From Leucoraja ocellata (lineage: Eukaryota), in the NCBI GenBank assembly GCA_036785375.1, contig JAWMAR010000471.1:1302001-1366000 (forward strand): DNA of 64,000 nucleotides, in the 5' to 3' direction. Below are positions 8,143 to 57,497 of the stretch, piece after piece. A program made the translations under genes and the position numbers. Position 1 is the first letter of the stretch. Every line of letters starts with the position of its first letter. Under the pieces are notes generated by a model. It was not told the DNA's origin. It saw only the letters and a program-made list of their open reading frames with translations, and searched no databases.

Positions 8143-10924
8143 CTAGTTTAACATTTTTTTAATTAGATTGATGGGGTATTTCACAGCAAACGTTAACTGG
8201 CCCCTGAATCGAGTCTGGGTCGCTGCATATACGCAGGAGTTAATGCACGAACCGAGAAGCTCCAACATGTGTCCGCTTTCCTGCAGGATAAACTTTGGAT
8301 CATTGGAATTGACGCCGCTGGCATAAGTGTTGCCTGTGATTTGCACACGCAGGAAATTCACAAGGTAGATCAACCGCAACAAGATAAAACATCCCGAGAT
8401 CACCATGAGCAAAACGATAGACTTTCTTCTGCTCTCCATCTCCGGGTCACACTTATTTTCTCCGTTGCTCTGGCATCGGAGCCTCCTGCGGGCTCGACTG
8501 GCTGCGAGAATGTGCCTGACTGTCAACATGTTGAGCAGCAAAATCAGTAGGAAGGGGACACATGGGTTCAATACAGGGCGTTGCCAGTCATAGATTCTCC
8601 ATGCAACGGAGGTATAATAGCTACTCTTGATGACGCAGTACCAGGGTACATTGCCAGTGACGTACATTGGTTCGAGAGGAAAGAAAGAGGGTATGTTCTT
8701 GAAACAGACCAGCATGAAAACTATCCCGATAACCACCGCCGCGGTTTTCTCTGTGCAGTATCGCAGTCTCAATTTTAGGCCGCAAATGGCGGTGAATCTG
8801 TCGAAGGCGAACGCTACCGTTAACCAGACGGAAGTGTCTTTGGAAACCCAGCTGAGGACAAGGATGAGTGTGCAGCCTGGCGTGGTGGAGAAGAAACTGT
8901 CCGGGAAATAAATAGCCCGTAGGCGGCTTAATATCACCACGGTGACTATGACCAGGAAATCCGCCACCGCCATAAACACCAGGTAAAGGGTGATACACTT
9001 GGAGAGGCCGCACTTTCCCTTCGACAGAATCACAATCGTCACCAAGTTCGCTGCAAGTGGGAAGCAGAGTAGTTAATAACGTAACTGTTCAACTGTGGCC
9101 AATTAATCATGACATGGGTAGACAATTCATCACATTAACAGATTGCTTACAGATTTCGAATAATCAATTTATGGAAAGATAACGATATCCTCGTTAAACT
9201 CATAGATACATAGAAACATAGAAAATAGGTGCAGGAGTAGAGGCCATTCGGCCCTTCGAGCCTGCACCGCCATTCAATATGATCATGGCTGATCATCCAA
9301 CTCAGTATCCTGTACCTGCCTTCTCTCCATACCCCCTGATACATTTAGCCACAAGGGCCACGTCTAACTCCCTCTTACATATAGCCAATGAACTGTGGCC
9401 TCAACTACCCTCTGTGGCAGAGAGTTATGCCCCTGTCCCATTGACAGTGCGGAAACTGACTCTTCGCCCACCAAGTCCGCGTCGACCAGCGATTGGTGTA
9501 TACCACACAGGATGGATATTTGGTTTACGATATTTGCCAATTACCCGACAAACCTGCACGTCTTTGGAATGTGGGAGGAAACGGGAGCAGCCCCTGGCGG
9601 TCAAAGAGAAAACGTGCAAACTCCTTGCAGATAATATCCGTAGTCAGGACCACGCCATGGCCTCTGGCGCTGTAAGGCAGCGACTCTACCGCTGCGTCAC
9701 TGTGCCGGCCCCACGACATCAGATTCTGAGCCGCATCTGTGGAGGCAATGGATTGTCGACGTTTCTTATCTGTTTAGTTCTGTTTAGTTATGTTTGGTTC
9801 TGTTTCGTTCCGTCTAGTTTAGTGCAGCTCAGTTTGGTTCAGTTTAGTTTAGTTTAGTGTAGTTTAGAGATGCAGCGTGGAAACATGCCCTTCGGCCCAC
9901 TGAGCCCGCTCCGACCAGTGATCCTCGGCCACAAACACTACCCTACACACATTAGGGAGAATTTATATTTATATCAAACCAATAAACCTACAAACCTGTG
10001 TCCCGAACCGCAGCACCCAATGAAAACCATGGCGGGGAAATGTAGAGACACTGTACAGACCGCACAATTGGAATTAATTGGGAAACAACTGACGAAGCTT
10101 ATCAGTAAACCCATTCTATATAAGCACGAGTGACCAATTGGTCGCGGGGCATGGATAAAGCGGGGGGCAGGAGTAAAAGCGGATGTGCTTAAAACATATG
10201 TAACTGGCCCTCTCCGGTAACACAGAGACATAGAAACATAGAAAATAGGTGCAGGAGCAGGCCATTCGGCCCTTCGAGCCTGCACCGACATTCAATATGA
10301 TCATGGCTGATCATCCAACTCAGTATCCTGCACTTGCCTTCTCTCCATCCCTTTAGCCACAAGGGCCACATCTAACCCTTTTAAATATACCCAATGAACT
10401 GTGGCCTCAACTACTTTCTGTGGCAGAGAATTCCACAGATTTACCACTCTCTGTGTAACAAAATGTTTTTTCTCATCTCGGTCCTAAAAGATGTCCCCTT
10501 TATACTTAAACTGTGACCCCTTGTTCTGGACTTCCCCAACATCGGGAAGAATCTTCCTGCATCTAGCCTGAACAACCCCTTAAGAATTTTGTAAGTTTCT
10601 ATGATCAATCTTTTAAATTCAAGCGAGTAACAAAAACAAAAAGGAATTCAGCGGGTCATGGAGCATCAGTGAAGGGAAGGGACAATGGACAAGAGACGCT
10701 TACAGACGGAGCCCGCTGAAGATCGATTGTAGTAGCGGAGATAAAGCTGGAAAAAGGGTGAAGGCGCGGCAATACTTGGCAAATGAAAGGTGTTGAAATG
10801 GCAGATAGGTACAGAAGTGACAAACGCGAAACGTTCATCTGCGGAAAACATTACCTGGAACACCAAACACCGCAAGAATAGTATAATAAATAGCAAAGAC
10901 CGGACCGTTTCCGGGCGCGTGCAT
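8143..10924 (-). CDS. GPR139/GPR142-like class A GPCR, copy 1, intact (exon 1 10924-10855; exon 2 9050-8143; 325 aa)
   Basis: Exon 1 encodes MHAPGNGPVFAIYYTILAVFGVP followed by G|GTAATG. Acceptor CCCACTTGCAG|CG AAC TTG GTG gives a phase-1 join P-A-N-L-V-T-I-V-I-L-S. 7TM ORF with MAVADFL, AFDRF, RYCTEKTA and NSCVYA. The phase-1 intron in TM1 matches GPR139 gene structure. Confidence 0.9.
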
Positions 10925-12130
10925 TTTCCGTGATGCCGTTGACCTATTCAGGTGTAGGTTCTGAACCAAGCGCCGCCACGGTTGCAGTTATACCCGGCGT
11001 TAACCTCTGGAGCGCCAATTAGCTTGCGACATCGCTGTTGTTATTTTCAATGTTCAGAACAAACAAATGAATGCAGTCATTTTCATGCAATTTTAATTAA
11101 TCTCGTAGGATGCATTGAAAGTGCTGACGCCTGCTTAGGATCACATAGAAGTCAGTACTTTTTTGAAAAATTGACTGGATGGGTCATGTGATTTAAGTTG
11201 ATAATTTACTAAATCGTTACTAATGATATTGTTGGTTGGTTGGATGAACTTTCAAAGCCATTCGATTACGTGAAAGGACTTACTCAAAATAAACGCATGA
11301 CGTTATATGCACAGCACGAACGTTGGCAATACGTTGGCTGTAGGATAGCAAAAAGGTTTTTCATTGCAAAGGGTTTGTAGTCGAGCGAAACGGCGACGAG
11401 AATTTCAATCACAGAACGATATCTTGCAATTGGGAGTGCAGATCACAATTTTAAAATGTGTAGGCGACCCACATTCTGGAACCTCTCCCCTTTATATCGA
11501 CAAGGATTCCACCGATGTAAGCTACTAAAACACTGTATTCCTCTATTACCGTTCGCGAGATTGATCCCTGGGATAGCGGGACTTTCATATGAGTAAAGAT
11601 TGGAAAGACTAGACTTGTATTGACTGGAGTTTAGAAGGATGAGGGGTATCTTCTAGAAACATATAAAATGATACAAGGACTGGCCAAGCTAGATGCAGGA
11701 AGAATGTTCCCAATGTTGGGCGAGTCCAGAACCAGGGGCCACAGTCTTAGAATAAAGGGGTGGCCATTTAAGACTGAGGTGAGAAAAAACTTGTTCACGC
11801 AGAGAGTTGTGAATCTGTGGAATTCCCTGTTTGACCTGCGTGGGTTTTCTCCGGGATCTTCGGCTTCCCCCCAATGACCCTCGGGTTTGTATGTTAATTG
11901 ACTTGGTATAATTGTTAACTATCGTTAGTGTGCGGAGGATAGCGTTCGTCTGCGGAGATCGCTGCTCGGCTTGGTGGGCTGAAGGACCTGTTTCGGCGCT
12001 AAATACCAATTGGTGATGTGGGGAGGAAGGATGGATGCATAGACAAACGGAAACTCTCCCAACAGAAGGATGCGCCTCCCCCCCCCCCCCCCTCCCACCA
12101 TTCGCCCGAGAAAACACCCATGCTGACGAA

Positions 12131-12150
12131 CACGTGACGTCACAGGAAGT
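12131..12150 (+). promoter_or_regulatory. E-box/CRE/ETS composite upstream of V1
   Basis: CACGTGACGTCACAGGAAGT contains CACGTG, a perfect CRE TGACGTCA (12135-12142) and GGAAGT. CRE and ETS are retained in the paralogous V3 flank (56521-56536). CRE elements are typical of TCR V promoters. Confidence 0.55.
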
Positions 12151-12598
12151 AGCAAATAACACACCCAGCGGGTCATCACTCGCGTTAAAAGACTGTCACT
12201 CACTTCATTTAAATTTGGTTTAGTTCTGTTTTGAGATGCTGCGCGGAATAACTCCCTTCGGCGCACCGAGTCCGCGCCCACTAACATCAGCCTACAACAC
12301 ACTAGGGATAATTCACTATTTTTTCCAAGCCGTCTTTGGAGTGTGGGAGTAAACCGGAGCGCCCGGAGAACAACACACGAAGGTGAGAGGGAGAAGGGGC
12401 AAAGACTCCGTCAAGACAACACCTGTGGTCAGGTTCAAACCCGGGTCTCTGGCGCAGCAATTCTCCCGCTGCGCCCAAGGTAGATACTTCCTCAGCTTTC
12501 GGCACGCACCCCGCCTTCAATCGCCTCAAACCGTCCGATCTTTACAGATTACGGATGAGCTACTGCAGAAGTCTGCTACCGAGGTTAACCGCGAGACC

Positions 12599-56520: not shown

Positions 56521-56536
56521 TGACGTCAGAGGAAGT
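56521..56536 (+). promoter_or_regulatory. CRE/ETS composite upstream of V3
   Basis: TGACGTCAGAGGAAGT, paralogous to 12135-12150. Confidence 0.55.
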
Positions 56537-57017
56537 AGCGAAAAACACACCCAGCGGGTCATTACTCGCGTTAAAAGACTGCCGCTTAAATTTGGTTTCG
56601 TTCCGTCTTGAGATGTTGCGCGGAATAAGTCCCTTCGGCCCACCGAGTCCGCGCCCAACAGCGATCCCCGGCACACTAACATTAGCCTACACAAACTAGG
56701 AATAATTTACTATTTTTCCCAAGCCAATTAGCCTACGTCTTTGGAGTGTGGCAGTGAACCGGAGCGCCCGGAGAACAACCCACGAAGGCGACAGGGAGAA
56801 GGTGCAAACCCTGTAAAGACAACACCCGTGGTCAGGTTCGAACCCGGGTCTCTGGCGCTTCAAGGCAGTAACCCTACCCTGCCGCCCAAGGAAGAAACCT
56901 AAGGGTCTAACCATAGCTCAGCTTTCGGCACACCATCCGCCTTGAACGGCACTTCAACCGTTGCAGGTGACGGAAAAGCCACTGCAGAGGTTTGCGTCCG
57001 AAGTTAACCACGAGACC

Positions 57018-57458
57018 ATGCTCTGCCACATTCTCATGATAATATGCACAGTGTTCGGTAAGTTTCGCGGCGCCTTTTCTCTGTTGCGTTTTATCCGACG
57101 TTTGCAACTTTCCAACTCAATGCTGTACTCAATTCACCAACGTTTAATTTTCAGGGGATATTCGGGGACAGTCGGTAAGGCAGCCGCAGACCGAGTTAAG
57201 TGTGGCTGAAGGATATTCAGTGAAAATACAATGCAGCTACACGGCAGGTACCAACAACCCAGACCTCTATTGGTACCGACAGCAAGCGGATCAGGCTCCC
57301 GAGTTCATTTTGTACCGGGATAACAGCAACAAAGCCGACGCTGATTTTGCAAAGGAGAGGTTCGCGGCTGATCAGACCAACGCTGGAAGGAATATCCCAT
57401 TGACAATCACAAAAGCAGAGCTCCAGGACTCCGGCCTGTATCTCTGCGCTCTGAGGCT
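57018..57458 (+). CDS. TCR alpha/delta V segment V3, paralogue of V1, apparently functional (leader 57018-57057; V exon 57155-57458)
   Basis: Leader MLCHILMIICTVF + G|GTAAG, acceptor TTTTCAG. QSVRQ...IQCSY...WYRQ...DSGLYLCALR, open reading frame. Confidence 0.93.
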
Positions 57459-57497
57459 CACAGTGTTTCAACGTTGAGCTGTCGCTCCACAAAAACC
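57459..57497 (+). other. 23-bp-spacer RSS of V3
   Basis: CACAGTG + 23 nt + ACAAAAACC. Confidence 0.96.

Follow-up and report, generated by a model that had tools for sequence, protein, structure and literature searches.

A 64,000-nucleotide stretch of the genome of the skate Leucoraja ocellata (GenBank assembly GCA_036785375.1, contig JAWMAR010000471.1, positions 1,302,001 to 1,366,000 of the forward strand; the window, hereafter) contains V segments of T-cell receptor (TCR) type interleaved with genes for rhodopsin-class G protein-coupled receptors (GPCRs), and this interleaving is confirmed as real by the analysis reported here. From 8 to 58 kb of the window, the list of open reading frames (ORFs) and Pfam searches reveal two kinds of gene, 7tm_1 receptors and V-set segments, which follow each other in the order GPCR1(-), V1(+), GPCR2-5(+), V2(+), V3(+); the GPCR genes are called G1 to G5 below. 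A first, sequence-only reading of the window had proposed this order and these strands, and a tblastn search with a member of the receptor family places five pairs of exon 1 and exon 2 in just this way. We think it probable that the window is part of the V region of the TCR alpha/delta locus (TRA/TRD), where ordinary rearranging V segments sit among a tandemly duplicating, elasmobranch-expanded family of rhodopsin-class receptors whose nearest characterised relative is GPR139, and where the receptor genes are resident passengers. Throughout, each exon was read and searched singly, exons were never joined, and gaps in the assembly were left unfilled.

All three V ORFs match the Pfam V-set model, with scores of 65.2, 44.3, and 57.6 bits where 26 bits is the cut-off, and their translations show the conserved Cys, the core motif WYRQ, and Y-x-C at the end. 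V1 has a leader at 12599..12638 (+ strand; read from the sequence) with an ATG and a phase-1 GT donor, and an intact V exon at 12735..13038 (+; V-set 65.2 bits) whose translation ends in C-A-L. Directly after this end, at 13039..13077 (+), comes a recombination signal sequence (RSS) made up of the heptamer CACAGTG, a 23-bp spacer, and the nonamer ACAAAAACC, with no mismatches. V3 is built alike, with a leader at 57018..57057 (+; ATG and phase-1 intron, again read from the sequence), an intact V exon at 57155..57458 (+) that also ends in C-A-L and shares 79% amino acid identity with V1, and, directly behind it at 57459..57497 (+), an RSS with the same heptamer, spacer length, and nonamer and no mismatches. 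A search for RSS allowing up to three mismatches finds these two sites, both of them perfect, as its sole matches in the window, while shuffled sequence yields a mean of 0.64 matches at that stringency. V2 belongs to another V family and is 40% identical to V1 and to V3. Its V exon at 51110..51414 (+) is an open frame, and the RSS-like site that follows at 51415..51452 (+) has the heptamer CACGGCG, with two mismatches, and a 22-bp spacer before the same nonamer. No leader with an ATG was found for V2, as both candidate donors upstream run back into a stop before any ATG, and the segment is probably a pseudogene or has a displaced leader. The earlier description of the V segments as RSS-bearing stands for V1 and V3, with their exact 7/23/9 signals, but has to be relaxed for V2. 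By tblastn, the window holds no V exons besides these three.

Among solved structures, the best matches to V2 are human TRDV3 and 1tvd, followed by many TCR alpha chains. For V1, the best matches overall are antibody light-chain V domains, and its best matches among TCR structures are TRDV3 (7lli) and 1tvd, followed by TCR beta. Protein searches for relatives of the V segments returned P0121 only, and no named shark or skate reference; the same protein was the sole match when the three V translations were compared by blastp to the 279 proteins gathered. P0121 (UniParc UPI000011ADDB) is an unnamed V-J product of 118 amino acids, 81% identical to V1 and 79% to V3, from a record that gives neither species nor chain class. 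Past V3, the window contains a D-like core at about 63730-63816 (- strand), which has a 12-bp RSS at one flank and a 23-bp RSS at the opposite flank; an intact J-like segment at about 63420-63480 (-), which reads FGEG...VEP and then GTAAG; and a second J-like segment near 61070-61135 (-), whose frame is disturbed by an extra G. These elements face the V segments, with no constant exon in between, in an orientation that hinges on the assembly gap at 60147-60346.

As for the receptor genes, Pfam model 7tm_1 is matched by all four exon-2 ORFs submitted (60.2, 51.2, 46.7, and 40.1 bits; cut-off 30.5 bits), and tblastn, with the full-length family member P0006 as the query that places the exons in the window, resolves all five loci into a short exon 1 and a long exon 2, so that the two-exon structure described earlier holds throughout. 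Seven copies of exon 1 are present, each with an ATG and a GT donor and each running for 23 codons plus 1 nt before the GT. An AG acceptor is found at four of the five exon-2 starts; the fifth, that of G4, falls inside the gap at 37189-37356. G1, on the - strand, has its exon 1 at 10855..10924, with a translation that agrees with the start of family member P0012, and its exon 2 at 8143..9050, intact from the end of transmembrane helix 1 (TM1) to the C-terminus including the stop (7tm_1, 60.2 bits; AG acceptor). G2, on the + strand like all those that follow, has exon 1 at 16629..16698 and an intact exon 2 at 18876..19792 (7tm_1; AG acceptor; 91% identity to P0001). In both G1 and G2 the reading frame is open from the acceptor through the stop codon.

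The other three copies are disrupted as assembled. G3 has exon 1 at 29285..29354 and exon 2 at 31907..32825 (end approximate), the latter 98.6% identical to exon 2 of G2 and set apart from it by five 1-nt deletions, near 32209, 32219, 32528, 32675, and 32740. G4 has exon 1 at 35841..35910 and an exon-2 remnant at 37357..38040, which begins at the edge of the gap with its acceptor unread, tracks G2 without indels over 684 bases, and then loses all homology past 38040, inside TM6; its 3' remainder was sought elsewhere in the window and not found. From 38040 to 41000, in place of that 3' end, there is an AT-rich block (36% GC) with LINE-like ORFs (LINE, long interspersed nuclear element) on the minus strand. 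G5 has exon 1 at 42199..42268 and exon 2 at 43963..44869, with one 1-nt deletion in a GG pair near 44530. Two lone copies of exon 1 complete the set, each with its ATG and GT donor and neither with an exon 2: one at 25567..25636 (+), with a LINE reverse-transcriptase fragment after it, and one at 27873..27942 (+), whose intron enters a gap at 28879. The intergenic DNA is mostly LINE debris, with reverse-transcriptase matches at 26247-27425. In both G2 (18830-18875) and G3 (31861-31906), the sequence before the acceptor of exon 2 is a long tract rich in CT and in C, and the gap of G4 coincides exactly with the expected position of this tract. G1 and V1 lie head to head and are transcribed divergently, with start codons (10924 and 12599) 1.67 kb apart; the spacer, 10924-12599, is partly high-copy repeat.

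In gene structure, as predicted from these exons, both kinds of gene are shown to be complete, independent transcription units: the receptor genes carry an exon with its own ATG, splice sites of the GT/AG type, and exon 2, and V1 and V3 each come with a leader, a V exon, and an RSS of their own. Within the window the two kinds also duplicate separately. In a self-comparison, exon 2 of G2, G3, and G4 are 94-98% alike, which marks these as young units, while G1 and G5, which match the other receptor copies at about 75%, go back further. V1 and V3 are 83% alike along a shared stretch of just 1.1 kb, no part of which recurs in the receptor units; a cassette in the window made of a V segment plus a receptor gene is thereby ruled out. 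The same self-comparison found no duplicated block in the window that carries both a V segment and a receptor gene. Ratios of nonsynonymous to synonymous substitution (dN/dS) were 0.16 for G1 against G2, 0.09-0.19 for the pieces of G5 against G1 or G2, and 0.28 for G2 against G4, and 0.75 for V1 against V3. Such estimates show the predicted receptor coding sequence to be under purifying selection.

To which family the receptors belong was judged from database matches, with exon 2 of G2 as query. This search retrieved 1582 proteins at E<=1e-5 among 2603 candidates. Among the 120 best matches listed, 117 carry a source name and every one of the 117 comes from a shark, skate, or ray; most of the 117 bear the name "probable G-protein coupled receptor 139", genes of this family being already named in public annotations. 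Of the 120, 32 lie on one chromosome of Heterodontus francisci and others on at least three more chromosomes. In Amblyraja radiata, a chromosome of 59.9 Mb carries P0002, P0007, P0027, and P0101. Searched against representatives at 50% identity, the query had 106 matches at E<=1e-30. Beyond cartilaginous fishes, the nearest relatives, which are again labelled GPR139, come from newts and axolotl (35% identity), from coelacanth (32%), and from teleosts (25-30%); the amphibian, coelacanth, and silverside relatives are proteins P0223, P0274, P0277, P0230, and P0248, with 30-35% identity to the skate family along their full length. The family may predate cartilaginous fishes and may have been lost in amniotes.

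The sequence-only reading had called the receptors an expanded GPR139-like cluster. The likeness stands, as human GPR139 is the best match among solved structures, but the match is weak: exon 2 of G2 scores 34.2 bits and the full-length shark member P0008 scores 53.3 bits, and an expansion of GPR139 itself does not follow from it. Such scores of 34-53 bits to human GPR139, together with the multiple copies, rule out that the receptors are GPR139 orthologues; a GPR139 orthologue would be single-copy, and there are five copies in the window alone. The newt protein P0223 and the anchovy protein P0263, the only two non-elasmobranch relatives compared, score 53.2 and 59.5 bits to human GPR139 and are likewise ruled out, at 53-60 bits, as its orthologues. 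Judged by sequence comparison, then, the receptors make up a separate family close to GPR139 rather than an expanded GPR139 orthologue. That this is a family other than the olfactory receptors, as had been stated, is borne out: among the ORFs of the window no match to the olfactory-receptor profile 7tm_4 was found at E<=0.01, and the coding region lies in two exons, not in the single coding exon of an olfactory receptor. The consensus OR52 structure is matched only at E=7.5e-5. An Atlas model of the homologue P0046 has a confident seven-helix fold (pTM 0.81), with class A receptors as its structural neighbours. In the skate copies, the DRY position reads DRF, and an N-terminus of about 7 residues precedes TM1.

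Family members from other genomes bear on the company that these genes keep. Among 20 over-long gene models of the family, in which fusions between V segments and receptors were looked for, none has a V-set domain. Three of them, from other elasmobranchs (P0134, P0192, and P0200), are instead fused to hemopexin, voltage-gated sodium channel, or integrin alpha domains, and members of the family therefore adjoin unrelated genes too. Family proteins derived from Logan were rejected as evidence of transcripts, since P0066 starts with intron read-through instead of the exon-1 peptide and the contigs look genomic. Phylogeny was estimated with FastTree, with local support values, from 73 of the 287 proteins gathered plus four pieces from the window. 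The rows were picked by hand and comprise most of the first 50 matches, more batoid rows, and named outgroups; the sample is biased to G2 matches, leaving out P0014, P0020, P0021, most of P0051-P0120, and most of the representatives. In this tree the four window copies fall in one starred batoid clade of 18 rows, which is nested in a starred clade of 23 rows with shark members. The open literature yielded no papers on this receptor family in cartilaginous fishes, subscription journals and supplements lying outside the search.

We interpret the receptor genes as resident passengers of a recombination-prone, segmentally duplicating locus, standing outside the antigen-receptor machinery, as do, by this view, the olfactory receptor genes among mammalian TRAV1/TRAV2 and the trypsin genes in TRB. 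To our knowledge, vertebrate genomes are cut and rejoined by design nowhere but in the antigen-receptor loci, and genes resident there are therefore expected to be deleted or inverted in every lymphocyte that rearranges across them. In a T cell, V(D)J joining would delete or invert whichever receptor genes lie between the joined segments on that allele, and the loss would be harmless if the receptors are used in other cells.

A different account would couple the two gene kinds functionally: the receptor genes would exploit, or be co-regulated with, the chromatin of the antigen-receptor locus, through one-gene-per-cell choice, lymphoid expression, or a shared CTCF and loop architecture, and the interleaving would be maintained by selection. 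The head-to-head placement of G1 and V1 speaks for this account, since a spacer of 1.67 kb between ATGs would allow a possible shared control region, as does the grouping of the four window copies in a single starred clade of batoid rows. We nevertheless regard such coupling as quite unlikely, given that V segments and receptor genes were not co-duplicated in the window, that the assembly shows disruptions in three of the five receptor genes, and that the family occurs on several other chromosomes as well, beside unrelated genes.

A more far-reaching proposal is that the TRA/TRD V region of skates, perhaps of all elasmobranchs, is a megabase-scale mosaic in which V segments and several hundred orphan receptors have been amplified and kept together, the receptors forming an undescribed sensory or immune repertoire that uses antigen-receptor-locus chromatin for gene choice or expression. 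Although we consider this proposal rather unlikely, it could, if true, contribute to explaining why so few canonical odorant receptors suffice for sharks and rays. The available text of PMC8455134 and PMC11979771 describes cartilaginous fishes as having few GPCRs and odorant receptors, and the text available of the latter, a catshark sensory study, reports no GPCR among the top 50 genes of its olfactory library. Yet the family reported here has more than 1000 database members from sharks, skates, and rays. Whether its genes hitch-hike on a duplication-prone region, as mammalian olfactory receptor and trypsin genes may, or belong to a conserved arrangement with shared control, is the question that the window raises; the role of the receptor family is a further question and stands on its own.

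An assembly artefact, in which contigs with V segments and contigs with receptor genes were wrongly scaffolded together, or noisy duplicate contigs inflate the cluster, seems very improbable to us, but its grounds deserve to be set out. The window has four gaps (runs of N), whose flanks were compared with the paralogous receptor units. That at 14144-14498 is intergenic, with flanks that nothing else in the window spans, and that at 60147-60346 lies between V3 and the D/J-like block. The gap at 37189-37356 is collinear with the paralogue G2, its left edge corresponding to about 18849 and its right edge to 18882 of the G2 unit, so that by homology about 32 nt, the acceptor included, are missing, and it is impossible to tell in which frame exon 2 of G4 begins. 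The gap at 28879-29078 is not collinear with the paralogous units, since its left edge corresponds to the middle of the intron of a G4-like copy and its right edge to a point 203 bases upstream of a G2-like exon 1. The lack of collinearity there, the number of gaps, and a pattern of indels in the G3 unit that is typical of unpolished long reads all favour an artefact. Two stretches free of N nevertheless contain both kinds of gene, 1-14143 with G1 and V1 and 37357-60146 with the G4 exon-2 remnant, G5, V2, and V3, and the adjacency of receptor genes and V segments is therefore independent of scaffolding.

Two further observations count against an artefact. In Leucoraja erinacea, protein P0012 shares 99% identity with G1 over 302 amino acids, and protein P0001 shares 96% identity with G4 over 219 amino acids; P0012 and P0001 are both annotated on a single scaffold of 173,151 bp in the L. 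erinacea assembly. Short-read contigs of four runs were also compared with positions 7600-13500, out of 24 runs listed by the run search, none of them on record as RNA. Contigs of run X1, which may be the sample behind the assembly and so possibly not independent of it, tile 7753-13214 nearly letter for letter, with 0-1 other letters in six of the eight pieces listed, 7 in 1225 letters in another, and 13 in the last, an end piece of 134 letters. They cover the unique parts of the interval, namely G1 exon 2, G1 exon 1, and V1 with its upstream region, and contigs of run X3, under a different organism label, cover the same parts of G1 and V1 at a difference of about 2%. All contigs break at repeats, and none joins G1 to V1 in one piece.

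That the local receptor copies are a graveyard of decaying relics instead of a working array, as the disruption of G3, G4, and G5 and the two lone copies of exon 1 might suggest, is hardly credible: G1 and G2 are unbroken and have canonical splice sites, dN/dS stands at about 0.16, an annotated orthologue shares 99% identity with G1, and the breaks in G3, and perhaps the one in G5, may be sequencing errors.

Several points weigh against reading the window as a stretch of TRA/TRD with passenger receptor genes. No constant-region exon was seen in the window, and because of this the assignment of the V segments to TRA/TRD, which rests on V similarity and on the D/J-like elements, is likely but not proven. 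The overall gene order spans three gaps and hence depends on them, and the gap at 28879-29078 may hide more sequence, possibly another exon 2. Between the duplicated units at 17979-21662 and 30979-34698 there are 41 indels over 3.66 kb, most of them of one base and located at short runs; this ratio of indels to substitutions suggests that the gap-bounded stretch 29079-37188 is poorly polished, or might be an artefactual repeat of the G2 unit. Hence the G3 breaks may be spurious, and the whole copy may have been duplicated in assembly. The two runs compared, out of five tagged "RNA?", match only repeats within 7600-13500. Finally, the passenger status of the receptor genes is an inference.

Comparison with known systems places the skate arrangement among its precedents. 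In mammals, according to the available text of PMC4574546, the human segments TRAV1-1, TRAV1-2, and TRAV2 have OR10G2 and OR4E2 among them, mouse TRAV1 and TRAV2 flank Olfr1507-1509, and odorant-receptor genes are found among TRAV1/TRAV2 in sheep too. As far as that text goes, it bears out the parallel, drawn when the window was first read, with olfactory receptor genes interspersed in the mammalian TRA/TRD V region. There, as here, rhodopsin-class receptor genes are interspersed with V segments as separate units. The receptor family is not the same, however, and whereas the two or three olfactory receptor genes of mammals sit distally, at the 5' end of the locus, the skate has five copies and two relics in 50 kb, adjoining D/J-like elements. 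The notion that the skate receptors occupy an analogous niche thus holds for their co-residence with V segments but not for their position.

A second precedent is the cluster of trypsin genes inside TRB in newt, axolotl, and frog, which the available text of PMC12698447 and PMC12529555 describes as kept from amphibians to mammals. The trypsin (PRSS) genes are likewise an unrelated tandem multigene family among TCR segments, though at another locus and of another family than in the skate; they form one block between the V and the D-J-C parts of TRB, whereas the skate receptor genes alternate with V segments. As for the receptors themselves, human GPR139 (7VUG, 9M42), the closest solved structure, is single-copy, whereas the skate family runs to hundreds of copies. 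Their nearest relatives beyond cartilaginous fishes, the proteins labelled "probable GPR139" in newts, axolotl, coelacanth, and some teleosts, have few copies on record. The gene for human GPR139 has two exons with a short first exon, a structure that the skate receptors share.

Neither a map of an elasmobranch TRA/TRD locus nor a published description of the arrangement was found in the open literature, a search that left subscription journals and supplements outside its range, and the earlier suggestion that V segments interleaved with such receptors had not been described agrees with this, no published locus map that shows them having turned up there. Because olfactory receptor genes in TRA and trypsin genes in TRB are documented, the presence of a foreign tandem gene family inside a TCR locus is a known principle; what is new in the skate is the family concerned, the density with which its genes alternate with V segments, and their position next to D/J-like elements.

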